DNA of 64,000 nt from positions 9,176,001-9,240,000 of the forward strand of contig CATNEN010000039.1 of NCBI GenBank assembly GCA_950097015.1, in the 5' to 3' direction. This DNA comes from Macrostomum hystrix (taxonomy: Eukaryota > Animalia > Platyhelminthes). Made by a program: the position numbers and the translations under genes. Positions 42,121 to 60,764 of this stretch are shown here, piece by piece. Position 1 is the stretch's first letter. Every line of letters starts with the position of its first letter. The notes under the pieces are model-generated. The model was not told the DNA's origin. It saw nothing but the letters and a program-made list of their open reading frames with translations, and searched no databases.

Positions 42121-42705
42121 ACGTGTTTCAGGCTAAATGGTACTATGGCAGGTAAGTTTAGGTTATAGTTGGTGAGTTGAAAACTGAGATTTAAAGTGCA
42201 ATGCCATTAAATGCACAGTGGTCTGAACCAGTTCTTAACTTAGATTTTTCTTCGCATCGTCGCGTGCTGTCAGACCAATTTTTTGTCCATTTTCCGCTGG
42301 CCGCGGTTGCAAAAGTCGGCGATTTTATTGGAATTTAAAAATTAACATCAGGAAAGTTCATTACTGGACGCTTTTGAAAGCAGAAAAGGGTTACAGCTCT
42401 GGAAGACTGAGCAATCAGTTGCAGGTGGCCCATTCGACTCTCTTCCTGTTCCCAGGAAATCCATTTTAGCTACCCCCGATTCTAAGCGTACATATTACTG
42501 TGAACTAAACTTCACAGCAATATAAAAGGTTCAGTTAAACGTGTGAATCAGTTCTCTACTAGTTTATCGGTATCTGAGATTCACAACTCTGTGAGAACAC
42601 AACCCTTATCGGCTTCTTCTTCTAAACTGCTAAATACAGAAGGCATACCTCATTGTGTATACTGTAGAAGGTCTACTGTAGATTGTAATTGTGTTTGGCG
42701 GAGCA

Positions 42706-43223
42706 AATGCTGAATGGGATGGGGATGCAGATGGTGAATGGGATGGGGATGCAGATGGTGAATGGGATGGGGATGCAGATGCAGAATGGGATGGGGATGC
42801 AGACGGTGAATGGGATGGGGATGCAGATGGTGAATGGGATGGGGATGCAGATGCAGAATGGGATGGGGATGCAGATGCTGAATGGGATGGGGATGCAGAT
42901 GCTGAATGGGATGGGGATGCAGATGCAGAATGGGATGGGGATGCAGATGCTGAATGGGATGGGGATGCAGATGCAGAATGGGATGGGGATGCAGATGCAA
43001 AATGGGATGGGGATGCAGATGCTGAATGGGATGGGGATGCAGATGCAGAATGGGATGGGGATGCAGATGCAGAATGGGATGGGGATGCAGATGCAGAATG
43101 GGATGGGGATGCAGATGCTGAATGGGATGGGGATGCAGATGCAGAATGGGATGGGGATGCAGATGCAGAATGGGATGGGGATGCAGATGCAGAATGGGAT
43201 GGGGATGCAGATGCAGATGCAGA
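42706..43223. repeat. 24-bp G-rich satellite, left arm
   Basis: Unit GAATGGGATGGGGATGCAGATGCA and variants, ~21 copies. Confidence 0.96.
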
Positions 43224-46200
43224 TGTAGTGCACTGCGTTGCCCTGTCCCTCCCACGCGGGCATAGTCAACGTGCACTGCTCTTGGCACGTACTGTATGTA
43301 TGCACGCACTGTTGCGTAATGCGCTCATGGCTGGACTGCACGTCGGCCTGCCTGCACTGGACGGCACTATATAACAACTCAAATATACGGCCCAAGAGGC
43401 CACGTTCCTTTCTCACTCAACTGCACTACAATGGCATCGCAAGTCAGTATTCAAACCCCACCCGCACTGGACCTGCGCACGGACCCTAGCACAGCCCAGA
43501 CAAAATGGAAGAAATGGCTCGCCCAGTTCCAGCTGTTCGCGGTCGCCGCAGGCATCGACGACAAGAAGCGGCTGCGCCAGCTGCTACTGTACACCGCCGG
43601 CGAGGACCTGCAGGCGATCGCGGCCGGCCTCACCAACGAGGCGGCGGGCAAGGACATCGATACACTCGTTGTCGCGCTCAATCAGCACTTCGACGGCAAG
43701 CGGAATCTGCCGTTCACCCGCTACCAGTTCAGGCTCTGCACTCAGCGCCCCGGTGAGCCCATAGACGACTGGCTCCAGCGCCTCAAGGACGCCGCCGACT
43801 GCTGCGCCTTCGGTGACCTGCGAGAGTCTCTGATCCGTGATCAGGTGATTGCCTGCTGCAGCTCCGACCAGCTCCGTCGAAAGCTGCTAGCCATCGATAA
43901 CGTGGACCTGGAGCAGGCGGTGCGGGCGGCCCGGGCCATGGAAGCGGCGGAGGCCCAAGCGAGCGTCATGGAGGCCAACGATGCGTCTGTGCAGCGGCTC
44001 CGACGTCAGGAGGCCGGTGCAGCAGCCCCTGCAGCGCGGCGGCCGACAGGGCAGCCGCAAGACAAGCAGCCGAACGGCAGGCAGACCAGGTGCATCAGGT
44101 GCGGAGCCCCCGGCCACCGCACGTGCAGCGCAGCCGAAGGCAAGACGTGCAACCGCTGCGGCAAGCGAAATCACCTGGCGAGGGCCTGCCTGTCCCGGCC
44201 GAAGGAAGACGTCCACGCCCTGCAGGCTGACAGCGACAGTTCAGCGGCGGAGGACGGCGTGTTCTGCCTGACCGTGGCAGCCACAGGAACCGCGGCAGCC
44301 GGAGCCCAGACGTCGGTGTTCGTCGGTTCAACGCAGCTGCCCGTGCTGGTGGACAGCGGCGCTGACTGCAACATCATCACCGAGCAGGCCTGGCGGACAC
44401 TGCCGGGACCCCCGCAGCTGCAGGCAACTCGCACGAAGATCTTCGCCTTCCGCTCGCCGAAGCCGCTCAGCACTCTGGGAGCCTGCAGCCTTCGGGTGTC
44501 AACGGGGCAGAACAGCAGGACGGTTCGCTTCATCGTCGTCCCCGGCGGCGGCACCAACATCCTGGGACGTGAGGCCTCGACTGCGCTCCGGCTCCTGAGC
44601 CTGGGGCCTCAGGTCCACGCGATCGAGGCAACCGAGACGGAGGACCCCGCTATCCAGGCGGTCGTCAGGCAATTTCCCGAGCTCTTCAGAGGCCTCGGCA
44701 AGGTCAAGGACGTCTCTGTGCAGATCAACATCAAATCCGACGCCAGACCAATCTGCCACCCGCCCTCCCGCGTTCCGGTGCACCTCCGGGAGGCGCTGGA
44801 CCGCGAGCTAGACGAGCAGGAGCAGCTGGGCATCATCCAGCCAGTCGAGGGCCCCACGCCGTGGGTCAGCCGCATCGTCGTGGTGCCGAAGGAGGACGGC
44901 AAGAGCGTGCGGATCACGCAGGATCTGCGCGACGTGAACAAGGCGGCGCTGAGGGAGCGACACCAGATCCCGACATTCGAGGAGGCGACAAGCGACATGG
45001 CTGGCTCATCGATCTTCAGCAAGCTCGACATCTTCAAAGCATTCCACCAGATTGAAATCAGCGAGGACAGCCGGAAGTACTTCGTGTTCTCAACGCCCCG
45101 AGGAATGCGGCAGTTGACTCGCCTGAGTATGGGATTCGCCTCTGCGTCAGAGATCCTACAGCGCGTGATGCAGCGAGTGCTGGAGGGCCTGACGGGTGTT
45201 AAGTGGATCCACGACGACATCATTGTCCACAGCCGAGACCTGAAGGCTCACAAGACTCACGTGGCTGCCTGCCTGACCAGACTGCGAGAGCACGGCATCA
45301 CCCTCAACGGCAGCAAGTGCCGCTGGGGGATCGGCAAGGCAAAGTTCATGGCGATGACGCTGTCCAAGTTTGGGATCCAGCCATCACAAGAGAAGATCGC
45401 CGAGCTGCAAGCCTTCAAAGACCCACAGTCCGTCAAGGAGGTCCGGTCGTTTCTCGGCCTGGCCAATCACCTGGAAAAGTTCATGCCCCAGCTAGCGGAC
45501 ATGGCGGAGCCGCTCAGGCGGCTGACACGGAATGGCCAGGAGTTTGTCTGGGACAGCGAGCAGCAGCAGGCCTTCCAGAACGTCAAGGACTGCATCTCGG
45601 AGAGCCGCACCCTGGCCTTCTTCGACAAACAGCTGCCAACAGAGCTGGTGGTCGATGCATCGCCCGCTGGCGTCGGCGCCATCCTGCAGCAGCGGCACCC
45701 CGGGGGGCAGACCCGGCCGGTGGCCTACGCGAGCCGCACCCTCAGCGAGGTCGAGCGGCGCTACAGCCAGATCGAGCGCGAGGCCCTGGGCGTCAAGTTC
45801 GGCTGCCTAAAGTTCGCGTTCTACCTGGAGGGCTGTCCTCATTTCGACGTCTACACCGACCACAAGCCGCTGCTGGGCATCTACAGGCCAGACTCCCGGC
45901 CACCGCCGCGACTCGAGCGCATCATGCTACAGACGCAGCACTTCTCGTTCACGCTACACTACCGCAAGGGCGAGGACAATCCGGCCGATCCCCTGAGCCG
46001 CAACCCGCTGCCGGAGACGTCGCCGGGCATGGACGTGGCCGCGGAGACCAGGCTGCTCAACGCCGTGGTCCAGGCCGCGACACCGAAGGGCCTGACGATG
46101 GACAGGATTCGCGCTGCAACCGAGAGGGACCCCGCCCTGACGGTCGTCATGCAAGCCCTAGCGACGGGCCACTGGCGCTGCGGCGCCGCGGCCCCGGCGC

Positions 46201-47714
46201 ACAGCTTCCGGTCCCTGAAGGATGAGCTCAGCGTCCACGACGGCGTGGTGCTCCGGGGCAGCAAGATCGTGATCCCGGCGGAGCTGCAGCAGCTGACCAT
46301 CGCACTGGCACACCAGGGTCACCTCGGCCAGAAGAAAACGTGCGACCGGCTGCAGCGGAAGGTCTGGTGGCCCGGCATGACACAGCAGGTCGAGGCCGTT
46401 GTCTCCCGCTGCCGCCCGTGCCAGGCGGCTCGACCGGACGGCGCCGTCAAGCAGCCGCCGATGCAACCGACACCGCTGCCCCCGGGGCCGTGGCAATCGC
46501 TGAGCGTGGACGTCTGCGGACCGTTCCCGACGGGCGAGAACGTGGTGGTCCTGGTGGACTACTTCAGCCGGTACCCGGACACTTACGTGGTGCGCAGCCT
46601 CACGAGCGCCAGCATCATCACCTGCGCCATGGCCTCGTTCAGTCGCTTCGGCGTGCCACAGCAGATCACCACGGACAACGCGACCTACTTCACGAGCGAG
46701 GAGTTTAAGGAGTTCCTCGACGGCCTCGGAGTCCAGCACCGCAGGGTCACCCCACTCTACCCGGCAGCGAACGGCGAGGTCGAGCGATTCAACCGCAGCC
46801 TCAACAAGTGTGTCAACGCCGCGGCAGCGGAGGGCAAGGACTGGCGCCGGGCCATCCATGAGTGGCTGCTCGGCTACCGCAACTCAGTGCACCGCGGCAC
46901 GGGCCGGTCGCCCAACGATCTCATGTTTAACAGGGCCGTAGGCGACCTCCTGCCGGCCGGCCCCGCGGAGCAGCTGGACGACGCCGGTCGGCAGCTGCAG
47001 CGTCATGACCGCAGCTACAAGCAGGCGATGCGCCGCGCGACTGACAAGCGACGAGCGGCAGCACCACACGGCATCGCGGCGGGCGCCCGCGTGCTGCTTA
47101 GGAACCGCGGCAAGGCCAAACTGCGGTGCCCGTTCGACCCGCGCCCCTGGCTCGTCAAAGCGGTCCACGGCGATGCACTGACGCTGGAGAGAGGCGAGGC
47201 CGTGCTGCGGCGGCACGTGACTGAGACCAAGCCGCTGCGCGAGTGCCCCTGGGAGCCAGACGAACCGCGGGACGGCCGGCCCGCTCATCCGCAGCCCGCC
47301 ACAGACGGCGGCGCCACGGACGGTGCCATAGCGCAGAGGCCCCACCCCAGGCAGGCTAAGAGGCACATCTGCTATAAGGAGTGACTGTAGTGACAGGGCC
47401 TGAGAGGCATCTTTCCATGCGAACTATTTGCGTTTTTTTGCGTTCTGATTTTTCAAGACCCACTCAATGCGCCGCGCGTTTGACCTTTTTACTCTGAGGG
47501 GGAGAGATGTAGTGCACTGCGTTGCCCTGTCCCTCCCACGCGGGCATAGTCAACGTGCACTGCTCTTGGCACGTACTGTATGTATGCACGCACTGTTGCG
47601 TAATGCGCTCATGGCTGGACTGCACGTCGGCCTGCCTGCACTGGACGGCACTATATAACAACTCAAATATACGGCCCAAGAGGCCACGTTCCTTTCTCAC
47701 TCAACTGCACTACA
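43224..47714 (+). mobile_element. Full-length Ty3/Gypsy LTR retrotransposon (Mag-like architecture), apparently intact
   Basis: LTRs 43224-43430 and 47508-47714 (207 bp, no differences found by eye, TGTAGTGCA...TGCACTACA ends). PBS-like TGG at 43432, PPT GAGGGGGAGAGA at 47496-47507, single gag-pol ORF. Confidence 0.96.
43431..47384 (+). CDS. Gag-Pol polyprotein (Gag, Zn knuckles, protease, RT, RNase H, integrase), 1317 aa
   Basis: CIRCGAPGH / CNRCGKRNHLARAC knuckles, LVDSGA protease, KLDIFKAFHQ and WIHDD RT, VDAS..YSQIEREAL..TDH RNase H, HQGH..CRPC Zn finger, and D-D-E integrase (VDVCGP, TDNA, GEVER). Confidence 0.95.
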   Translation: MASQVSIQTPPALDLRTDPSTAQTKWKKWLAQFQLFAVAAGIDDKKRLRQLLLYTAGEDLQAIAAGLTNEAAGKDIDTLVVALNQHFDGKRNLPFTRYQFRLCTQRPGEPIDDWLQRLKDAADCCAFGDLRESLIRDQVIACCSSDQLRRKLLAIDNVDLEQAVRAARAMEAAEAQASVMEANDASVQRLRRQEAGAAAPAARRPTGQPQDKQPNGRQTRCIRCGAPGHRTCSAAEGKTCNRCGKRNHLARACLSRPKEDVHALQADSDSSAAEDGVFCLTVAATGTAAAGAQTSVFVGSTQLPVLVDSGADCNIITEQAWRTLPGPPQLQATRTKIFAFRSPKPLSTLGACSLRVSTGQNSRTVRFIVVPGGGTNILGREASTALRLLSLGPQVHAIEATETEDPAIQAVVRQFPELFRGLGKVKDVSVQINIKSDARPICHPPSRVPVHLREALDRELDEQEQLGIIQPVEGPTPWVSRIVVVPKEDGKSVRITQDLRDVNKAALRERHQIPTFEEATSDMAGSSIFSKLDIFKAFHQIEISEDSRKYFVFSTPRGMRQLTRLSMGFASASEILQRVMQRVLEGLTGVKWIHDDIIVHSRDLKAHKTHVAACLTRLREHGITLNGSKCRWGIGKAKFMAMTLSKFGIQPSQEKIAELQAFKDPQSVKEVRSFLGLANHLEKFMPQLADMAEPLRRLTRNGQEFVWDSEQQQAFQNVKDCISESRTLAFFDKQLPTELVVDASPAGVGAILQQRHPGGQTRPVAYASRTLSEVERRYSQIEREALGVKFGCLKFAFYLEGCPHFDVYTDHKPLLGIYRPDSRPPPRLERIMLQTQHFSFTLHYRKGEDNPADPLSRNPLPETSPGMDVAAETRLLNAVVQAATPKGLTMDRIRAATERDPALTVVMQALATGHWRCGAAAPAHSFRSLKDELSVHDGVVLRGSKIVIPAELQQLTIALAHQGHLGQKKTCDRLQRKVWWPGMTQQVEAVVSRCRPCQAARPDGAVKQPPMQPTPLPPGPWQSLSVDVCGPFPTGENVVVLVDYFSRYPDTYVVRSLTSASIITCAMASFSRFGVPQQITTDNATYFTSEEFKEFLDGLGVQHRRVTPLYPAANGEVERFNRSLNKCVNAAAAEGKDWRRAIHEWLLGYRNSVHRGTGRSPNDLMFNRAVGDLLPAGPAEQLDDAGRQLQRHDRSYKQAMRRATDKRRAAAPHGIAAGARVLLRNRGKAKLRCPFDPRPWLVKAVHGDALTLERGEAVLRRHVTETKPLRECPWEPDEPRDGRPAHPQPATDGGATDGAIAQRPHPRQAKRHICYKE

Positions 47715-50700
47715 GATGGGGATGCAGATGCAGAATGGGATGGGGATGCAGATGCAGAATGGGATGGGGATGCAGATGCAGAATGGGATGGGGATGCAGA
47801 TGCTGAATGGGATGGGGATGCAGATGCAGAATGGGATGGGGATGCAGATGCAGAATGGGATGGGGATGCAGATGCAGAATGGGATGGGGATGCAGATGCA
47901 GAATGGGATGGGGATGCAGATGCTGAATGGGATGGGGATGCAGATGCAGAATGGGATGGGGATGCAGATGCTGAATGGGATGGGGATGCAGATGCTGAAT
48001 GGGATGGGGATGCAGATGCTGAATGGGATGGGGATGCAGATGGTGAATGGGATGGGGATGCAGATGCTGAATGGGATGGGGATGCAGATGCTGAATGGGA
48101 TGGGGATGCAGATGCAGAATGGGATGGGGATGCAGACGGTGAATGGGATGGGGATGCAGATGGTGAATGGGATGGGGATGCAGATGCAGAATGGGATGGG
48201 GATGCAGATGCTGAATGGGATGGGGATGCAGATGCAGAATGGGATGGGGATGCAGATGCAGAATGGGATGGGGATGCAGATGGTGAATGGGATGGGGATG
48301 CAGAGGCAGAATGGGATGGGGATGCAGATGGTGAATGGGATGGGGATGCAGATGCAGAATGGGATGGGGATGCAGATGCAGAATGGGATGGGGATGCAGA
48401 TGCAGAATGGGATGGGGATGCAGACGGTGAATGGGATGGCGATGCAGATGCAGAATGGGATGGGGATGCAGATGCTGAATGGGATGGGGATGCAGATGCT
48501 GAATGGGATGGGGATGCAGATGCAGAATGGGATGGGGATGCAGATGCTGAATGGGATGGGGATGCAGATGCTGAATGGGATGGGGATGCAGATGCTGAAT
48601 GGGATGGGGATGCAGATGCTGAATGGGATGGGGATGCAGATGCTGAATGGGATGGGGATGCAGATGCTGAATGGGATGGGGATGCAGATGCAGAATGGGA
48701 TGGGGATGCAGATGCTGAATGGGATGGGGATGCAGATGGTGAATGGGATGGGGATGCAGATGCAGAATGGGATGGGGATGCAGATACAGAATGGGATGGG
48801 GATGCAGATGCTGAATGGGATGGGGATGCAGATGCTGAATGGGATGGGGATGCAGATGCAGAATGGGATGGGGATGCAGACGGTGAATGGGATGGGGATG
48901 CAGATGGTGAATGGGATGGGGATGCAGATGCAGAATGGGATGGGGATGCAGATGCAGAATGGGATGGGGATGCAGATGCAGAATGGGATGGGGATGCAGA
49001 TGCTGAATGGGATGGGGATGCAGATGCAGAATGGGATGGGGATGCAGATGCAGAATGGGATGGGGATGCAGATGCAGAATGGGATGGGGATGCAGATGCT
49101 GAATGGGATGGGGATGCAGATGCAGAATGGGATGGGGATGCAGATGCTGAATGGGATGGGGATGCAGATGCTGAATGGGATGGGGATGCAGATGCTGAAT
49201 GGGATGGGGATGCAGATGGTGAATGGGATGGGGATGCAGATGCTGAATGGGATGGGGATGCAGATGCTGAATGGGATGGGGATGCAGATGCAGAATGGGA
49301 TGGGGATGCAGACGGTGAATGGGATGGGGATGCAGATGGTGAATGGGATGGGGATGCAGATGCAGAATGGGATGGGGATGCAGATGCTGAATGGGATGGG
49401 GATGCAGATGCAGAATGGGATGGGGATGCAGATGCAGAATGGGATGGGGATGCAGATGGTGAATGGGATGGGGATGCAGAGGCAGAATGGGATGGGGATG
49501 CAGATGGTGAATGGGATGAAGATGCAGATGGTGAATGGGATGGGGATGCAGATGCAGAATGGGATGGGGATGCAGATGGTGAATGGGATGGGGATGCAGA
49601 GGCAGAATGGGATAGGGATGCAGATGGTGAATGGGATGGGGATGCAGAGGCAGAATGGGATGGGGATGCAGATGGTGAATGGGATGGGGATGCAGATGCA
49701 GAATGGGATGGGGATGCAGATGCTGAATGGGATGGGGATGCAGATGCAGAATGGGATGGGGATGCAGATGCAGAATGGGATGGGGATGCAGATGCTGAAT
49801 GGGATGGGGATGCAGATGCAGAATGGGATGGGGATGCAGATACAGAATGGGATGGGGATGCAGACGGTGAATGGGATGGGGATGCAGATGCAGAATGGGA
49901 TGGGGATGCAGATGCAGAATGGGATGGGGATGCAGATGCAGAATGGGATGGGGATGCAGATGGTGAATGGGATGGGGATGCAGATGCTGAATGGGATGGG
50001 GATGCAGATGCAGAATGGGATGGGGATGCAGATGCTGAATGGGATGGGGATGCAGATGCAGAATGGGATGGGGATGCAGATGCAGAATGGGATGGGGATG
50101 CAGATGCAGAATGGGATGGGGATGCAGATGCAGAATGGGATGGGGATGCAGAGGCAGAATGGGATGGGGATGCAGATGGTGAATGGGATGGGGATGCAGA
50201 TGGTGAATGGGATGGGGATGCAGATGGTGAATGGGATGGGGATGCAGATGGTGAATGGGATGGGGATGCAGATGCAGAATGGGATGGGGATGCAGATGGT
50301 GAATGGGATGGGGATGCAGATGGTGAATGGGATGGGGATGCAGATGGTGAATGGGATGGGGATGCAGATGGTGAATGGGATGGGGATGCAGATGCAGAAT
50401 GGGATGGGGATGCAGATGCTGAATGGGATGGGGATGCAGATGCAGAATGGGATGGGGATGCAGATGCAGAATGGGATGGGGATGCAGATGCAGAATGGGA
50501 TGGGGATGCAGATGCAGAATGGGATGGGGATGCAGATGCAGAATGGGATGGGGATGCAGATGGTGAATGGGATGGGGATGCAGATGCAGAATGGGATGGG
50601 GATGCAGATGCAGAATGGGATGGGGATGCAGATGCAGAATGGGATGGGGATGCAGATGCAGAATGGGATGGGGATGCAGATGCAGAATGGGATGGGGATG

Positions 50701-53700
50701 CAGATGGTGAATGGGATGGGGATGCAGATGCAGAATGGGATGGGGATGCAGACGGTGAATGGGATGGGGATGCAGATGCAGAATGGGATGGGGATGCAGA
50801 CGGTGAATGGGATGGGGATGCAGATGCAGAATGGGATGGGGATGCAGATGCAGAATGGGATGGGGATGCAGATGCAGAATGGGATGGGGATGCAGATGCA
50901 GAATGGGATGGGGATGCAGATGGTGAATGGGATGGGGATGCAGATGCTGAATGGGATGGGGATGCAGATGCAGAATGGGATGGGGATGCAGATGCAGAAT
51001 GGGATGGGGATGCAGATGCAGAATGGGATGGGGATGCAGATACAGAATGGGATGGGGATGCAGATGCAGAATGGGATGGGGATGCAGATGCAGAATGGGA
51101 TGGGGATGCAGACGGTGAATGGGATGGGGATGCAGATGCAGAATGGGATGGGGATGCAGATGCAGAATGGGATGGGGATGCAGATGCAGAATGGGATGGG
51201 GATGCAGACGGTGAATGGGATGGCGATGCAGATGCAGAATGGGATGGGGATGCAGATGCAGAATGGGATGGGGATGCAGATGCAGAATGGGATGGGGATG
51301 CAGACGGTGAATGGGATGGGGATGCAGATGCAGAATGGGATGGGGATGCAGATGCAGAATGGGATGGGGATGCAGATGCAGAATGGGATGGGGATGCAGA
51401 CGGTGAATGGGATGGCGATGCAGATGCAGAATGGGATGGGGATGCAGATGCAGAATGGGATGGGGATGCAGACGGTGAATGGGATGGGGATGCAGATGCA
51501 GAATGGGATGGGGATGCAGATGCAGAATGGGATGGGGATGCAGATGGTGAATGGGATGGGGATGCAGATGCAGAATCGGATGGGGATGCAGATGGTGAAT
51601 GGGATGGGGATGCAGATGCAGAATGGGATGGGGATGCAGATGCAGAATGGGATGGGGATGCAGATACAGAATGGGATGGGGATGCAGATACAGAATGGGA
51701 TGGGGATGCAGACGGTGAATGGGATGGGGATGCAGATGCAGAATGGGATGGGGATGCAGACGGTGAATGGGATGGGGATGCAGACGGTGAATGGGATGGG
51801 GATGCAGATGGTGAATGGGATGGGGATGCAGATGCTGAATGGGATGGGGATGCAGATGCAGAATGGGATGGGGATGCAGATGGTGAATGGGATGGGGATA
51901 CAGATGCTGAATGGGATGGGGATGCAGATGCTGAATGGGATGGGGATGCAGATGCTGAATGGGATGGGGATGCAGATGCAGAATGGGATGGGGATGCAGA
52001 TGGTGAATGGGATGGGGATGCAGACGGTGAATGGGATGGGGATGCAGATGCAGAATGGGATGGGGATGCAGATGCAGAATGGGATGGGGATGCAGATGGT
52101 GAATGGGATGGGGATGCAGACGGTGAATGGGATGGGGATGCAGATGCAGAATGGGATGGGGATGCAGATGAAGAATGGGATGGGGATACAGATGCTGAAT
52201 GGGATGGGGATGCAGATGCAGAATGGGATGGGGATGCAGATGCAGAATGGGATGGGGATGCAGATGCAGAATGGGATGGGGATGCAGATGGTGAATGGGA
52301 TGGGGATGCAGATGCAGAATCGGATGGGGATGCAGATGGTGAATGGGATGGGGATGCAGATGCAGAATGGGATGGGGATGCAGATGCAGAATGGGATGGG
52401 GATGCAGATACAGAATGGGATGGGGATGCAGATGCAGAATGGGATGGGGATGCAGACGGTGAATGGGATGGGGATGCAGATGCAGAATGGGATGGGGATG
52501 CAGATGCAGAATGGGATGGGGATGCAGATGGTGAATGGGATGGGGATGCAGATGCAGAATCGGATGGGGATGCAGATGGTGAATGGGATGGGGATGCAGA
52601 TGCAGAATGGGATGGGGATGCAGATGCAGAATGGGATGGGGATGCAGATACAGAATGGGATGGGGATGCAGATACAGAATGGGATGGGGATGCAGACGGT
52701 GAATGGGATGGGGATGCAGATGCAGAATGGGATGGGGATGCAGACGGTGAATGGGATGGGGATGCAGATGCAGAATGGGATGGGGATGCAGATGGTGAAT
52801 GGGATGGGGATGCAGATGCAGAATGGGATGGGGATGCAGATGGTGAATGGGATGGGGATGCAGATGCAGAATGGGATGGGGATGCAGACGGTGAATGGGA
52901 TGGGGATGCAGATGCAGAATGGGATGGGGATGCAGACGGTGAATGGGATGGGGATGCAGATACAGAATGGGATGGGGATGCAGATGCAGAATGGGATGGG
53001 GATGCAGATGGTGAATGGGATGGGGATGCAGATGCAGAATCGGATGGGGATGCAGATGGTGAATGGGATGGGGATGCAGATGCAGAATGGGATGGGGATG
53101 CAGATGCAGAATGGGATGGGGATGCAGATGCAGAATGGGATGGGGATGCAGATACAGAATGGGATGGGGATGCAGATACAGAATGGGATGGGGATGCAGA
53201 CGGTGAATGGGATGGGGATGCAGATGCAGAATGGGATGGGGATGCAGACGGTGAATGGGATGGGGATGCAGATGCAGAATGGGATGGGGATGCAGATGGT
53301 GAATGGGATGGGGATGCAGATGCAGAATGGGATGGGGATGCAGATGCAGAATGGGATGGGGATGCAGATGCAGAATGGGATGGGGATGCAGATGCTGAAT
53401 GGGATGGGGATGCAGATGCAGAATGGGATGGGGATGCAGATGCAGAATGGGATGGGGATGCAGATGCTGAATGGGATGGGGATGCAGATGCAGAATGGGA
53501 TGGGGATGCAGATACAGAATGGGATGGGGATGCAGATACAGAATGGGATGGGGATGCAGACGGTGAATGGGATGGGGATGCAGATGCAGAATGGGATGGG
53601 GATGCAGATGGTGAATGGGATGGGGATGCAGATGCAGAATGGGATGGGGATGCAGATGCAGAATGGGATGGGGATGCAGATGGTGAATGGGATGGGGATG

Positions 53701-55208
53701 CAGATGCAGAATGGGATGGGGATGCAGATGCAGAATGGGATGGGGATGCAGATGGTGAATGGGATGGGGATGCAGATGCAGAATGGGATGGGGATGCAGA
53801 TGGTGAATGGGATGGGGATGCAGATGGTGAATGGGATGGGGATGCAGATGGTGAATGGGATGGGGATGCAGATGCAGAATGGGATGGGGATGCAGATGCA
53901 GAATGGGATGGGGATGCAGATGCAGAATGGGATGGGGATGCAGATGCAGAATGGGATGGGGATGCAGATGGTGAATGGGATGGGGATGCAGATGCAGAAT
54001 GGGATGGGGATGCAGATGCAGAATGGGATGGGGATGCAGATGCAGAATGGGATGGGGATGCAGATGCAGAATGGGATGGGGATGCAGACGGTGAATGGGA
54101 TGGGGATGCAGATGCAGAATGGGATGGGGATGCAGATGGTGAATGGGATGGGGATGCAGATGCAGAATGGGATGGGGATGCAGACGGTGAATGGGATGGG
54201 GATGCAGATGCAGAATGGGATGGGGATGCAGATGCAGAATGGGATGGGGATGCAGATGGTGAATGGGATGGGGATGCAGATGGTGAATGGGATGGGGATG
54301 CAGATGCAGAATCGGATGGGGATGCAGATGGTGAATGGGATGGGGATGCAGATGCAGAATGGGATGGGGATGCAGATGGTGAATGGGATGGGGATGCAGA
54401 TGCAGAATCGGATGGGGATGCAGACGGTGAATGGGATGGGGATGCAGATGCAGAATGGGATGGGGATGCAGATGGTGAATGGGATGGGGATGCAGATGCA
54501 GAATCGGATGGGGATGCAGATGGTGAATGGGATGGGGATGCAGATGGTGAATGGGATGGGGATGCAGATGCAGAATGGGATGGGGATGCAGACGGTGAAT
54601 GGGATGGGGATGCAGATGCAGAATGGGATGGGGATGCAGATGCAGAATGGGATGGGGATGCAGATGCAGAATGGGATGGGGATGCAGATGCAGAATGGGA
54701 TGGGGATGCAGATGCAGAATGGGATGGGGATGCAGATGGTGAATGGGATGGGGATGCAGATGCAGAATCGGATGGGGATGCAGATGGTGAATGGGATGGG
54801 GATGCAGATGCAGAATGGGATGGGGATGCAGATGGTGAATGGGATGGGGATGCAGATGGTGAATGGGATGGGGATGCAGATGGTGAATGGGATGGGGATG
54901 CAGATGCAGAATGGGATGGGGATGCAGATGCAGAATGGGATGGGGATGCAGATGCAGAATGGGATGGGGATGCAGATGGTGAATGGGATGGGGATGCAGA
55001 TGGTGAATGGGATGGGGATGCAGATGCAGAATGGGATGGGGATGCAGATGGTGAATGGGATGGGGATGCAGATGGTGAATGGGATGGGGATGCAGATGGT
55101 GAATGGGATGGGGATGCAGATGCAGAATGGGATGGGGATGCAGATGCAGAATGGGATGGGGATGCAGACGCTGAATGGGATGGGGATGCAGATGGTGAAT
55201 GGGATGGG
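47715..55208. repeat. 24-bp G-rich satellite, right arm (~312 units)
   Basis: Same unit as 42706-43223. Phase is preserved across ~7.5 kb, producing the 2506-aa repeat ORF. Confidence 0.97.
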
Positions 55209-55448
55209 GTCAGCAGGTATTGTCTGGAATGTGTAAGTAAAGTTGAGTTTGTTTAGAAATCAGTTGCTAACTATCCTACTCTTTCTTTTATAAGTAGCAT
55301 GAATCGGATAATAATGTTATTTTTCGTCTGACATCAATAAGCATTCAATTAAAGGAATCATAAAAAATGGCTATTGTTTACAAAATCAAAAGATTAAATT
55401 AAGTTATAGATAATCATATTTTATTTATCTTTACTATTATCTCCCATC

Positions 55449-55987
55449 GCTAAAAGACAACGGGGAGTATTTCAAATACCCTTTGTCTACTTTACGATAG
55501 CTTCCAAATCGAATGACCGATTTTCGTAAAAGTCCACCATCTGAATAAAAATGTTCCGCACTTTTGGATGAACTAACTTTCAAAGCCGTACTCAGTTAGA
55601 ATTTTTGAGATATTGTCGAAGACCCTGGTGACAAGGACAAACATTGCTGTGTATGAACCTCTTTGGAGAATTCATATTGGTTCAGTAATATAAAAATTAA
55701 CAACATAATCAATACAACATACTTTGCAATGATAGGCGACATGGATACATGGTAACATTTAGTGGGCAAAAATATTTGCCCATTTTTGTAGTTTTTGGCA
55801 CCCCGACGAGAGAATCGTTGAATATCTCGACGATGTTTAGTGATTGTTGAAGTTGTTTCATCGGAGAGAGCGAAGAAACTTAGCTTACGAGCGTATCGTC
55901 AGGATTTTCAGCGCGATTAGGTGAAAATTTTGAGAGATAGTGAAAAAATGAACAAGGTGGGTATATACCCCGTGGTCCTTTATTCTG
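55449..55987. mobile_element. Diverged CAGTAG MITE family copy
   Basis: GAGTATTTCAAATACCC...GAATGACCGATTTTCGTAAAAGTCCACCAT...ACCCCGTGGTCCTTTATTCTG|TTAA. Confidence 0.6.
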
Positions 55988-56095
55988 TTAATGGCTTCCA
56001 GTGAAAAGAAATGCAAAAAATTTCCGGCTTTTCGTAATCGCAGCTGTGAAGCGGCGCGGACTGGGCAGGCCCCCACACAATGCCCGCTAAAATAG

Positions 56096-56103
56096 TATAA
56101 AAG
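56096..56103 (+). promoter_or_regulatory. Candidate TATA box of the P2C ATPase gene
   Basis: TATAAAAG ~110 nt upstream of the ATG at 56205, preceded by a GC-rich patch. Confidence 0.5.
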
Positions 56104-56204
56104 AAAGCCAAAAAAGCATCATTGACTGGCAATTTTCCAATCTGTTCTGCGACCCAGTTCAGACACACACATCTCTGGAGCCTGCCAAACAACAGCCAGC
56201 AACA

Positions 56205-59200
56205 ATGGGAGATAAAGTGAGTTTGAGTTCTTTTGAGTCCACAGCGGTATCGTTTGATAATTTTTATGTAATTTAATAGCTCTATTTCTTTCCAGGCGGA
56301 AAAACCGTCTTCGGGCAAGAAGGAAAAGAAGAAGGACCTGAACGACCTCAAGAAGGAGATGGAGATGGATGAGCACAAGATCAGCCTTGAGGAGTTCTAC
56401 GCGCGCCAGTCCGTGGACCCGACGCAGGGCCTCTCGTTGGCCGAGGCCAGGCATCGCTTGGAGAAGTTGGGCCGCAACGAGCTCACACCGCCCAAGGAGA
56501 CGCCGGAGTGGGTGAAGTTCATCCGCGCCTGCTTCGGCGGCTTCTCACTGCTGCTGTGGGTTGGCGCCTTGCTCTGCCTGCTGGCCTACGGCATCCAGTA
56601 CACCCAGTCGGACTTCCCTCCAGGAGACAATCTCTACTTGGCTATTGTGCTCATTCTGGTGGTGCTGGTTACGGGCATCTTCGCCTACTACCAGAACGCC
56701 AAGTCCGCCCGCATCATGGACAGCTTCAAGAAGATGGTGCCGCAAAACGCTCTTGTCCTGCGCGACGGCCAAAAGATTCATATTCCCTGCGAGGAAGTGG
56801 TGGTGGGAGACATTGTGTTCATCCAGCTGGGCGACCGAGTGCCGGCTGATGTGCGCGTGATCACCGCCCAGAGCTTCAAGGTGGACAACTCGGCGCTGAC
56901 CGGAGAGTCGGAGCCGCAGTCAAGGACGCCCGAGTTTACAACCGATAATCCCCTAGAGACAAAGAATCTAGTCTTCTATTCCACTAGCGCTGTTGAAGGT
57001 GAGAAATTTACTTTTTTGGTCTATAAATAGATATATATGACACCTAGCCCAGTAGAGCCAGTCGTACAGCCAGTTACGCATCCTTTGTTTAGGAACGTGC
57101 ACTGGCATTGTCGTTGCCATCGGCGACAACACAGTCATGGGTCGCATCGCCAATCTGACATCTGGCCTTGGCGAAGAGATGACGCCAATCGCCAGGGAGA
57201 TCCGCTACTTCATTCACATCATCACTGGCGTGGCCTTCACTCTTGGCATCTCATTTTTTGCTATCGCGTTCGGCCTCGGATACTACTGGCTGGACTCCAT
57301 CATCTTCCTGATTGGCATCATCGTTGCCAACGTTCCGGAAGGCCTGATGGCTGCGGTCCCAGTCGGCCTCACACTGACTGCTAAGCGAATGGCGGCGAAG
57401 AACTGCCTGGTGAAAAATCTGGAAGCTGTGGAAACGCTCGGATCCACAAGCACCATCTGCTCAGATAAGACTGGTGAGTAGCCTTGCTCACCACTGCACT
57501 CACCCACTACTCACACAATTGATTTGCCACTGAAAAGCGGAATCAGCGTCAAAGATCCTACTTCAAGGACTGGATGGTTATAGGAAGTTTTTGCTTAGTG
57601 GTTAGGGCGTCGGACTCAGGATTTAAAGGTCGGGGGTTCGATTCCCGAATCTACTGGAACAATTTATGTAACTTATCAAGACACTAAACTCTGCATTGCT
57701 TTAGTTCACTGACCTGTTAAATAGGTATCAGCATTATATCAGGGTGTCGCCCCTCAGTCCATGGACTGAACAGCCGTACGCAGCCTGCAGATGCGTCGCG
57801 AAATAGCTGCGGCTGTGCTGTGGGCTGCACATCTGGCCCTATCTCCTATTTGTCGTTTTTGTAGAACGAAAATACTTTTCTCTTCATCAGGCACACTGAC
57901 CCAGAATCGAATGACCGTGTCGCACATGTGGTACAACAATGAAATTATCGAGGCCGACACAACCGAGGAGCAGACTCACGCGCAGCATGACATCAACTGC
58001 CAGGGCTTTGTGGCTCTGAGTCGCTGCGCTATGCTCTGCAACCGAGCCGAATTCAAATCTGGCGAAGATAACAAACCCGTGCTGAGGCGAAAGTGCAACG
58101 GTGACGCTTCTGAGAGCGCCATCCTGAAGTGCACGGAGCTCAGCGTCGGCAAAGTGATGGAATACCGCAAGAACAACACAAAAGTGTGCGAGGTTCCATT
58201 TAACAGCAGCAACAAGTTCCAGGTTTCTATTCATCGAACTGACGACGGAGATCCGCGCTACCTGCTGGTGATGAAGGGAGCTCCAGAGCGCATTCTCGAC
58301 CGCTGCTCCACAATCTTCATCAACGACCAGGAGCTCGAGATGGACGAAAAGTGTAAATCGGCGTTCAACACTGCGTACGAAGACCTGGGAGGCATGGGCG
58401 AACGAGTACTAGGCTTCTGCGACCTGCGGCTTCCAGTGGACAAGTACCCTGATGGCTACAAGTTTGATCCTGACGAGATGAACTTCCCGGTCTCAAACAT
58501 GCGCTTTGTCGGACTCATGTCCTTGATCGACCCGCCAAGAGGATCCGTGCCCAGCGCTGTAATGAAATGCCGCTCTGCAGGTATCAAGGTAGGCGCTCAT
58601 GCTTGTCATTCCTCAAACTAAAAAAACTATTATTTTACTAAACTGACACCAAGTTGTGCCACAAAAATTTTCTCCAGGTCATCATGGTCACAGGTGATCA
58701 TCCCATCACAGCGCACGCAATCGCCAAGACTGTCGGCATCATTGGCCCGCAGAGCAAGACGGTGCAAGAAATCGCGAAGGAGCGCGGCACAGACGTATCC
58801 AAAGTGAATCCCGGCGAAGCCATAGCCTGCGTTGTCCACGGATCCGATCTTCGCGATCTGTCCTCCGACCAGTTGGATGACGTTCTAAATAATCACTCCG
58901 AGATCGTGTTCGCCCGCACCAGTCCCCAGCAGAAGTTGATCATTGTTGAAGGCTGTCAGAGGCTGGGCCAGATTGTGGCAGTGACTGGCGACGGTGTAAA
59001 TGATTCTCCTGCGCTGAAGAAGGCCAACATCGGCATCGCCATGGGCATTGCCGGTAGCGACGTCAGCAAGCAGGCGGCTGACATGATCCTACTCGATGAC
59101 AACTTTGCCTCGATTGTGACTGGCGTCGAGGAGGGACGAATCATCTTCGACAATCTAAAGAAGCTGATCACCTACGTCTTGACGTCAAACATCCCCGAAC

Positions 59201-60081
59201 TGATACCTTTCCTAGTCTACGTGCTATCAGGTATTCCACTGCCGCTTGGCACCATCACGATTCTGTTCATTGATCTAGGCACCGACCTGATCCCGGCAAT
59301 CTCGCTGGCCTACGAGACCGCTGAGAGCGACATAATGAAACGCAAACCGCGAAATCCGAAGAAGGACCATCTCGTAAACGGCCGCCTGCTGGGCGTGGGC
59401 TACGCGCAGTGCGGAATCATCGCCACAGCTGGTGGCTTCTATGTTTACTGCGTTGTGATGGCTGAGAACGGATTCCTGCCCGACAAGCTCATTGGCTTGC
59501 GCGCCGAGTGGGACAGCATCGCCATCAACGATATCAAGGACAGTTATGGACAAGAATGGGTGAGTGAAAGGGGAGGTTGTTGTACCAAAAGGTCCAGAAT
59601 TCGAATCTTATTGTGCAAGACACAAAATTCCCGATTGTTGCTGTAAACAAAACGTCTGTGCCACAGGCTGCACACCTGCTTCACAATTACTTTAGTTTCT
59701 GATAATACAAACGTTGAATTTCAGTCGTACGGTCAGCGCAAGAACCTGGAGTACGCGGGCCAGACGTCTTTCTTCGTCGGCATCGTGATGATGCAGTGGG
59801 GCGACCTGCTGGCCAGGAAGACTCGCCGAATCTCATTCTTCCAGCAGGGCATGGAGAACAACCAGGCCACGTTTGGTATGTTCTTCGAGACCGCTCTGGC
59901 CTGCTTCGTAGTCTATTGTCCGGGCATGGACGTCAGCCTGCACACGCAGCCGATGCGCTTCTATTGGTGGCTGCCGGCTGTGCCGTTCTCAATTTATCTG
60001 TTCTGCTACGACGAACTGCGCAAGTATTTGATTCGCAGTCTGCCACCCGGCAACTGGGTCGAGCGAAACACCGACTTTTAA
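56205..60081 (+). CDS. P-type IIC ATPase alpha subunit (Na+/K+-ATPase alpha family, with H,K-like M8), 6 exons, ~1010 aa
   Basis: Exons 56205-56216 (MGDK), 56296-56998, 57093-57473, 57891-58588, 58678-59559 and 59725-60081; GT-AG introns, total 3033 nt. Motifs [60 protein letters not shown]. Confidence 0.95.
57593..57850 (+). mobile_element. tRNA-derived SINE, family B, in ATPase intron 3
   Basis: GCTTAGTGGTTAGGGCGTCGGACTCAGG (A box)...GGGGTTCGATTCCCG (B box), and a body with the palindrome TCAGTCCATGGACTGA. Confidence 0.65.
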
Positions 60082-60764
60082 ATGTACTTTTACTTAAGAA
60101 AGCAGGTTTTCTTGACGACTTCAAACATTCACGAGCTGGCTAACAAAGGTTATTTAAGGTTGTCATTATCGAAATAATTGTTTTGAACTGATTCATTTTG
60201 AACTCAGAACATGCGAATCGATGATTAGTTAGTCCTGCTTGCTTACGCTAATATTTATGTTCCAATGAAATGCCGCTTATAGCTGTGAAATCATCCGAAG
60301 GTGCACGAGACAGTAATTGGCTTGAGCACGAGTTTTAGTTCGAGTACTACAGGCTACATTTACTTGTAAAGCGAATTAATCATGTATTCATTGAAGACTG
60401 TTCAAATATATAACTGCGTTGTTTATTGTTTAAATACAATCAGCTGCTCAAAGCAGGTCTGAGAATTACGAGCTTTATAGTGCATTCACCATCGACAGAT
60501 GGGAAATCTTAATCTGGCATGTCAAGAAACTGGTTAATTATACTCAAACGTCAGCTAAGCATAATGGACTTGATATTAGATCCAAAACTATTTGGTGATT
60601 GAACCTAACTTGTGATATGTAAAACATTATTCATTGATAATGTCTTTCCAAATATTTACTAAGATTCATTGGAAAAGTAACACTGATTTGCAATGTACAC
60701 TCGCAGGTTACTAAAAGCGAGTTGTCAGTTTCCAACGTTATACATACATTCAGCGAAATAATTA

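Follow-up and report, generated by a model that had tools for sequence, protein, structure and literature searches.

Pump stoichiometry was long regarded as fixed. Artemia alpha2KK (PDB 8k1l), which carries two Asn-to-Lys changes in membrane segments M4 and M5 and works as an electrogenic 2Na:1K pump, is an example of nature tuning it (PMC10756188); in that protein the place of a bound cation is taken by a tethered side chain with positive charge, which lowers the stoichiometry. In structures of the H,K-ATPases, an Arg in M8 forms a salt bridge with the Asp of cation site III (PMC9463140). The corresponding engineered Na,K-ATPase of Holm et al. 2017, C932R in rat or C930R in pig numbering, is electroneutral as summarized in PMC10812997 and PMC9463140. 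The M8 Arg mutant has a stoichiometry of 2Na+:2K+ (PMC10812997) and stays strictly Na+ dependent, and strict H+ selectivity further needs a Lys in M5 and loss of the Trp924-supported site III (PMC9463140). So far this switch is known only from the engineered mutant and from the vertebrate H,K-ATPases, of which it is a trait (PMC9463140, PMC10812997). Here we describe a gene of the flatworm Macrostomum hystrix whose predicted product is a Na,K-type alpha subunit with Arg at the same M8 site. The gene lies in a window of 64,000 nucleotides (assembly GCA_950097015.1, contig CATNEN010000039.1, positions 9,176,001 to 9,240,000); coordinates below are those of the window unless a contig is named, and residues are numbered as in the pig enzyme.

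The gene occupies 56205-60081 of the forward strand and has six coding exons with GT-AG introns, amounting to 3030 nt and 1010 amino acids (Table 1). The model was obtained by reading 55200-59730 together with the list of open reading frames (ORFs), and it is backed by intron-free contigs described below. In a Pfam search of the exons, the P-type ATPase domains PF00122, PF00690, PF13246, PF00702 and PF00689 were all found above cut-offs, and the catalytic motifs ICSDKTGTLTQN, TGESEPQ and MVTGDHP are intact. Exon 6, which is open from its AG acceptor (59723-59724) until its terminal stop, aligned end to end with M8-M10 of Na,K-ATPase alpha in a phmmer search against PDB chains (best E 5.8e-37). 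All of the top matches were Na,K-ATPase alpha chains; matches to H,K-ATPase chains were weaker (E 1e-26 to 1e-20; 96 bits vs 130 bits). The beta-binding sequence DSYGQEW is kept at the end of exon 5. By these similarities the product is a P2C-type (Na,K-/H,K-) alpha subunit of the Na,K rather than the H,K type. We predict it to be catalytically intact and dependent on a beta subunit, a prediction that shares the even standing of the overall explanation to which it belongs. The beta-subunit family of this genome (15 PF00287 matches at no fewer than eight loci, on C30, C7, C28, C33, C3, C39, C1 and C25) is itself multi-copy, parallel to the expansion of the alpha subunits. A second, Cys-type alternative copy of exon 6 was not found in the window, and the gene is not annotated in the supplementary tables published with the M. 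hystrix genome.

The original prediction had placed an Arg codon, AGG, at 59815-59817 within M8, and translation of exon 6 agrees. In the phmmer alignments this Arg, residue 31 of the exon, faces the Cys of QWADLIICKTRR, which in alpha4 is Ser; when exon 6 is aligned by BLASTP with vertebrate ATP4A (P0164; 43% identity), the residue faces the Arg of MCQIADVLIRKTRR. Together, the two alignments identify the site as that of pig Cys930, rat Cys932 and Arg949 in non-gastric H,K-ATPase (ngHKA). The ligands of sites I and II, Glu327, Ser775, Asn776, Glu779, Asp804 and Asp808, are all present (VPEG, TSNIPE, IDLGTD), and Pro778 and Glu954 are kept as well. Site III has Tyr771, Thr774, Gln923, Trp924 and Asp926, yet position 930 is occupied by Arg instead of the small uncharged Cys or Ser. 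The Lys that H,K-ATPases have in M5 is absent (YVLTSNIPE vs YTLTKNIPE in P0164). In M8, Arg930 is present but Trp924 is retained (QWGD vs QIAD of ATP4A), and the segment thus has half of the H,K-ATPase signature. The mosaic described originally, in which the M5 Ser, both M6 Asp residues and the Gln and Asp of M8 are of the Na,K type, is therefore what the complete gene encodes. The ..TYY tail at the C-terminus of canonical pumps supports Na+ affinity at site III; the M. hystrix protein lacks this tail and ends in ..NTDF.

By analogy with C930R/C932R and with the H,K-ATPases, the guanidinium group of the Arg would pair with Asp926 (Asp919 of the flatworm protein) and neutralise it, and Na+ site III would be abolished. 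With Ser775, Asn776, Pro778, Glu779, Asp804, Asp808, Glu327 and Trp924 kept, the pump would still be Na+-activated and K+-dependent, and for each ATP it would move 2 Na+ against 2 K+ with no net charge. The combination Ser775/Pro778/Trp924/Arg930 equals the genotype of C930R, which makes a Na+- and K+-dependent electroneutral 2:2 pump the best-supported prediction. We give roughly even chances to the reading that the gene encodes an intact P2C pump, one of six in a flatworm-specific clade, and that a single Cys-to-Arg swap has made it an electroneutral 2Na:2K exchanger. The predicted neutralisation of site III, the stoichiometry and the electroneutrality are carried over from the engineered C930R/C932R pumps. 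The likeness to these mutants extends to Ser775, Pro778, Gln923, Trp924 and Asp926 beside Arg930, and to the intact ligands of sites I and II. Unlike C932R, however, the flatworm pump is natural, is known from sequence, and has in addition T772V, V922M, I929A, Y1015D/Y1016F and four changes in M4.

With ATP4A and ATP12A the flatworm protein shares the P2C family, the dependence on a beta subunit and the Arg at the same site of M8, one turn past the conserved Asp (..D..xRKTRR). It differs from them in having Ser775 for the M5 Lys and Trp924 for their Ile, and in nesting among flatworm Na,K-ATPases. Because Ser775 is present and Trp924 is kept, H+/K+ exchange appears less likely than Na+/K+ exchange. 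A functional H+/K+ exchanger, that is, a flatworm analogue of the H,K-ATPase behind the SCH-28080-sensitive activities inferred from pharmacology in planarians, has in its favour the H,K-type Arg, the flatworm host, and the use of H,K-ATPase pharmacology in planarian regeneration work (e.g. PMC5443973, PMC4895326). This alternative is improbable given the same two residues and the strict Na+ dependence of the C930R Na,K-ATPase (PMC9463140); moreover, planarians are only distant relatives of Macrostomum, and the protein sets of other flatworms yielded no orthologue. Among the pump-family members of the M. hystrix genome we saw no true H,K-type gene, with Lys in M5 at the position of Ser775.

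The Arg codon was compared with two sets of contigs from sequencing runs. DNA contigs of run X1 are identical to the assembly over 59019-60300, with zero differences. Contigs of run X2, which is labelled 'DNA?', lack introns, showing that X2 contains spliced transcripts. One of these (record 10) joins 56820-56996, 57091-57472 and 57890-58586, a second contains the splice joint 59558 to 59724 (GT..AG), and a third spans 59785-60300 with the AGG at 59815-59817 unchanged. The borders of exon 2 are marked by record 9, which begins exactly at 56296 and has 110 letters upstream of it, and by record 10, whose first block stops at 56996; X2 contigs also cover 56100-56240. Scattered single-nucleotide differences separate X2 from the assembly (e.g. 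58253, 58432, 58980 and a synonymous one at 59979), none of them at 59815-59817. The X2 contigs are from a different allele than the assembly, and they show that the gene is transcribed, with splicing as in the model. Since the AGG is identical in X1 DNA and in X2 transcripts of another allele, an error of assembly or polishing is excluded as the source of the Arg. The chance of such an error is negligible also in view of the AGR codons at the equivalent site of five further paralogues, and no point in its support was found.

A search of the genome with exon 5 revealed nine genes that share this 882-nt exon, and in addition some more divergent genes (Table 1). The paralogues were projected onto the window protein by tblastn, and a small number of residues next to exon borders may therefore be incorrect. 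The Arg of M8 belongs to a clade of six paralogues, a point absent from the original prediction, which had considered a single gene. Five of the six have AGG and one has AGA, as compared with TGC in the canonical paralogues; going from TGC to AGR needs at least two steps, possibly by way of Ser (AGC). Four of the Arg genes form an array on C11, two on each strand. The exon 4 protein is near-identical in the C11 copies at 2.873, 2.879 and 2.903 Mb but the remaining exons are not alike, a pattern suggestive of gene conversion; in addition, 6 aa are deleted in the 2.903 Mb copy (AFNR|GMGERV). The sixth Arg gene, at C39:20.69 Mb, reads IRKTLR in M8 and ISVGTE for IDLGTD in M6 (Asp804 to Ser, Asp808 to Glu). 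It has LLASNIPE in M5, an intact DKTG (ICTDKTG) and fused exons 4 and 5, and has the look of a pump whose cation site was rebuilt.

Two canonical-looking M. hystrix genes, at C38:4.88 Mb and C10:0.33 Mb, match the M8-Arg gene in the structure of exons 5 and 6. Like canonical alpha subunits of other flatworms (Macrostomum lignano P0160 and P0162, schistosome, cestode), which fall in the same clade of the tree described below, they differ from it in having Cys930 (TGC), Thr772, Ile929 and a ..ETYY C-terminus. The C10 gene and its copy on C41 have equal tblastn identities and scores for each matched exon, and their exon 6 proteins are the same. The pair may reflect either a haplotig left uncollapsed or a duplication of very recent date. 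Residual duplication in the assembly is mentioned in the M. hystrix genome paper (PMC10468722).

In being a natural invertebrate paralogue that exists beside canonical ones, the M8-Arg pump resembles Artemia alpha2KK, but it has one Arg in M8 directed at site III and a predicted stoichiometry of 2Na:2K. In the divergent P2C paralogue at C11:4.32 Mb, M5 reads TLTSKVPE, equivalent to Asn776-to-Lys, and M4 retains its Asn (IVANVPEG); it thus has the M5 half of the alpha2KK signature. Two proteins of the bdelloid rotifer Didymodactylos (P0002, P0152) have the same Lys, in YTLSSKIPE. The C11:4.32 Mb paralogue sits on a long branch near the base of the animal clade.

The relationships of these genes were examined in a tree of 39 rows (LG+G4). 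It contained ten M. hystrix paralogues (the dead C2 gene and the duplicate on C41 being excluded), alpha subunits of flatworms, annelids, molluscs, nemerteans, brachiopods, rotifers and arthropods, vertebrate ATP1A1/2/3 and ATP4A (ATP12A was not included), and three divergent representatives as the outgroup. In this tree, in which ATP4A and some of the paralogues sit on long branches, the six Arg genes are united in a single clade (ultrafast bootstrap 100, Shimodaira-Hasegawa-like approximate likelihood ratio test 99). This clade lies within a Macrostomum clade (100/99), which is itself within Platyhelminthes (98/100). Constraining the Arg clade to group with ATP4A lowered the log likelihood by 44.6 and gave p = 0.031 in the approximately unbiased (AU) test. 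A quick tree of 65 rows agreed in topology, and in both trees the canonical C10 and C38 copies are each sister to a M. lignano protein, in keeping with the flatworm host that the original prediction had allowed for. By the nesting of the Arg genes among flatworm Na,K-ATPases and the result of the AU test, the Arg was gained a single time in macrostomid Na,K-ATPases, convergently with the vertebrate H,K-ATPases. The claim that the residue arose separately in the two groups is thus upheld.

Selection was estimated by the Nei-Gojobori method on exons 5 and 6 (1236 nt, gap-free). The ratio of nonsynonymous to synonymous substitution rates (dN/dS) is 0.053 for the M8-Arg gene and its nearest sister, at C11:2.895 Mb, with dS of about 1.1, and it ranges from 0.05 to 0.27 across all pairs. 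By these estimates the genes of the Arg clade are old duplicates under purifying selection. This low ratio bears on whether the gene encodes a non-transporting or decaying paralogue, be it a pseudo-pump with a regulatory or scaffold role or a pseudogene of recent origin, with the Arg as one of many relaxed changes. Degenerate relatives do exist in the genome, including the C39:20.69 Mb gene with its ISVGTE and a very divergent paralogue on C2 in which the catalytic residues are gone (CTGKTG, TGPSEP, TGGDVAD in place of DKTG, TGES and GDGVND), and the M8-Arg gene itself has four changes in the invariant M4. However, its frame is open in all exons, its catalytic motifs and the ligands of sites I and II are intact, and it is spliced and transcribed; we consider loss of transport very unlikely.

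The Arg clade was compared with 151 canonical pumps at positions at least 95% invariant among them, the set having been picked for Cys930, so that this one column is circular. Near site III, all or nearly all of the Arg genes have T772V, A770T, I780L, V922M, I929A/V, N935x and H912Q, and the clade also differs at a number of sites elsewhere. Tyr1016, at least 95% conserved in the canonical pumps, is Phe in all six genes. Other changes are confined to the M8-Arg gene and C11:2.895 Mb: Y1015D, Gln854 to Ala or Ser, and, in M4, L330M, T332A, T334P and C336G within the sequence PEGLLATVTVCL, which is otherwise invariant. Neither the co-varying changes around site III nor the M4 quartet, like the six-gene clade, had been part of the original prediction.

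These substitutions weigh against an electroneutral 2Na:2K pump, as do some of the data on expression and conservation. The M4 quartet could impair or re-tune coupling. Ala929, Val772, Met922 and the ..TDF end are unlike the rat mutant, and the Arg could sit differently among them; changes other than the Arg could also shift the stoichiometry in another way. Transcription of the gene was seen in one run only (X2). Two further runs with the same species label, X4 and X5, whose kind is not on record, do not contain the gene; they contain a paralogue fragment reading IVIMQWADII and then ARKTRR. In addition, no orthologue was seen in the protein sets of other species, which limits the case for conservation to the M. 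hystrix genome.

Given these substitutions, the gene may instead encode a functioning Na,K pump that has stayed electrogenic (3Na:2K or another charge-moving ratio, for example 2Na:1K), its Arg repositioned or its sites re-shaped by the neighbouring changes. Several invariant positions around site III changed along with the Arg, four more changed in M4 of this gene, and in ngHKA intermediates single and double swaps at these positions led to unexpected electrogenic modes (PMC9463140). We nevertheless hold an electrogenic pump to be unlikely. Asp926, Gln923, Trp924 and Tyr771 are all retained; the Arg follows Asp926 at a distance of one helical turn (i+4), an arrangement shared with both H,K-ATPases, in which the salt bridge has been observed (PMC9463140); and it has been retained in six genes over dS > 1. 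Electroneutral 2Na:2K exchange remains our preferred prediction for the M8-Arg gene. The extension of it to the clade, namely that macrostomids have a whole subfamily of such pumps (the six M. hystrix genes) which arose independently of vertebrates and work beside canonical electrogenic ones, is put forward more tentatively and at rather less than even confidence.

The Arg is rare among relatives. At the M8 site, Cys is found in 117 of the 120 best-matching full-length relatives and Ser in one, and the sole Arg is that of vertebrate ATP4A. Among 150 representatives clustered at 50% identity, a level that would merge members of the Arg clade into canonical clusters, Arg occurs in three divergent proteins only, P0045 (with cluster member P0153), P0141 and P0142. 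All three lie outside the animal clade and are probably non-animal. When the 608-aa protein of the C11:2.903 Mb gene was used as the query, no orthologue appeared in the proteins of other species among the best 120 matches, the best being a canonical M. lignano protein at 69% identity. Residues 294-587 of the same query reached 80% at best, and exon 6 alone gave a single match at 53%. These negative results are weak owing to the length window, the restriction to the best 120 matches and the fragmentary annotation of M. lignano. In searches of the literature on C930R/C932R, on reduced-stoichiometry pumps and on planarian H,K-ATPase, we found no description of a Na,K-type pump that has Arg in M8 naturally.

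Table 1. Coordinates of the M8-Arg pump gene, its M. hystrix paralogues and other features of the window
Feature	Position	Strand	Remarks
Coding exon 1	56205-56216	+	MGDK; GTGAGT donor at 56217; 5' untranslated region upstream
Coding exon 2	56296-56998	+	N-terminus, M1-M2, TGES (A domain); PF00690, PF00122
Coding exon 3	57093-57473	+	M3-M4 up to ICSDKTG; PF00122
Coding exon 4	57891-58588	+	N domain, KGAPE; PF13246; 57890-58586 in X2 record 10
Coding exon 5	58678-59559	+	M5, M6, M7, SYGQEW; PF00702, PF00689
M5 YVLTSNIPE	59173-59199	+	Within exon 5
M6 IDLGTD	59269-59286	+	Within exon 5
Coding exon 6	59725-60081	+	M8-M10 and C-terminus ..WVERNTDF; stop TAA 60079-60081
M8 motif	59788-59829	+	Pig Gln923, Trp924, Asp926 kept
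AGG codon	59815-59817	+	Arg923 of the protein; pig Cys930, rat Cys932, ngHKA Arg949
C-terminal Thr-Asp-Phe	60070-60078	+	Canonical: Thr-Tyr-Tyr
Arg clade (6 genes)	This gene; C11:2.895, 2.903, 2.873, 2.879 Mb; C39:20.69 Mb		M8 Arg
Array of four Arg-clade genes	C11:2868501-2908500		
Sixth Arg gene	C39:20683001-20693000	+	
Canonical-looking paralogues	C38:4.88 Mb; C10:0.33 Mb (C10:324501-334500; identical copy at C41:341001-351000)		M8 Cys
Divergent paralogue	C7:9.75 Mb		M8 Cys
Divergent paralogue	C11:4.32 Mb (C11:4318001-4328000)	-	M8 Cys; M5 Asn776-to-Lys
Dead paralogue	C2:6.78 Mb (C2:6778001-6788000)	-	Without DKTG, TGES, GDGVND; M8 exon not recovered
Repeat in intron 3	57510-57932		Probable tRNA-derived element
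24-bp minisatellite	47715-55209; 42689-43228		
Putative gag-pol ORF	43431-47384	+	1317 aa

Other features of the window include a very high-copy repeat in intron 3 of the pump gene, with a summed contig word depth of 2-5 x 10^5 in the DNA run. It includes a tRNA-like stretch, GGTTCGATTCCCG, in which ARAGORN called no tRNA, and is probably a tRNA-derived short interspersed nuclear element. Upstream of the gene lies a 24-bp minisatellite, GATGGGGATGCAGATGCAGAATGG, with 312 copies, 94% matches and a GC skew of +0.72, one frame of which stays open over 2506 aa of a GMGMQMQN repeat. Within the minisatellite, in a region of about 64% GC, is an unbroken ORF with gag zinc knuckle, protease, reverse transcriptase, RNase H and integrase-like stretches, by which it is identified as gag-pol of a gypsy-like long terminal repeat retrotransposon. 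As the same repeat resumes upstream of the retroelement, the latter seems to have been inserted into the array.

A Na,K-type pump that has Arg in M8 by nature, and is both under selection and expressed, offers a way to test if neutralisation of site III works in a native context. It also displays the compensating changes made by evolution (T772V, I929A, C-terminal Tyr to Phe), and it offers a living model of an intermediate between Na,K- and H,K-ATPases. If the predicted 2Na:2K exchange is correct, the Arg clade would comprise the first natural Na+-dependent electroneutral P2C pumps, a natural step on the path from Na,K- to H,K-ATPase, and the Cys-to-Arg switch in M8 would be the same one that defines the H,K-ATPases. 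With no true H,K-type gene (Lys for Ser775 in M5) seen in the pump family of this genome, 'H,K-ATPase' pharmacology in flatworms should be read cautiously. Macrostomum is a genetically tractable flatworm genus, and such a host could show what use is made of an electroneutral sodium pump, for example in epithelia, protonephridia or reproductive tissue.

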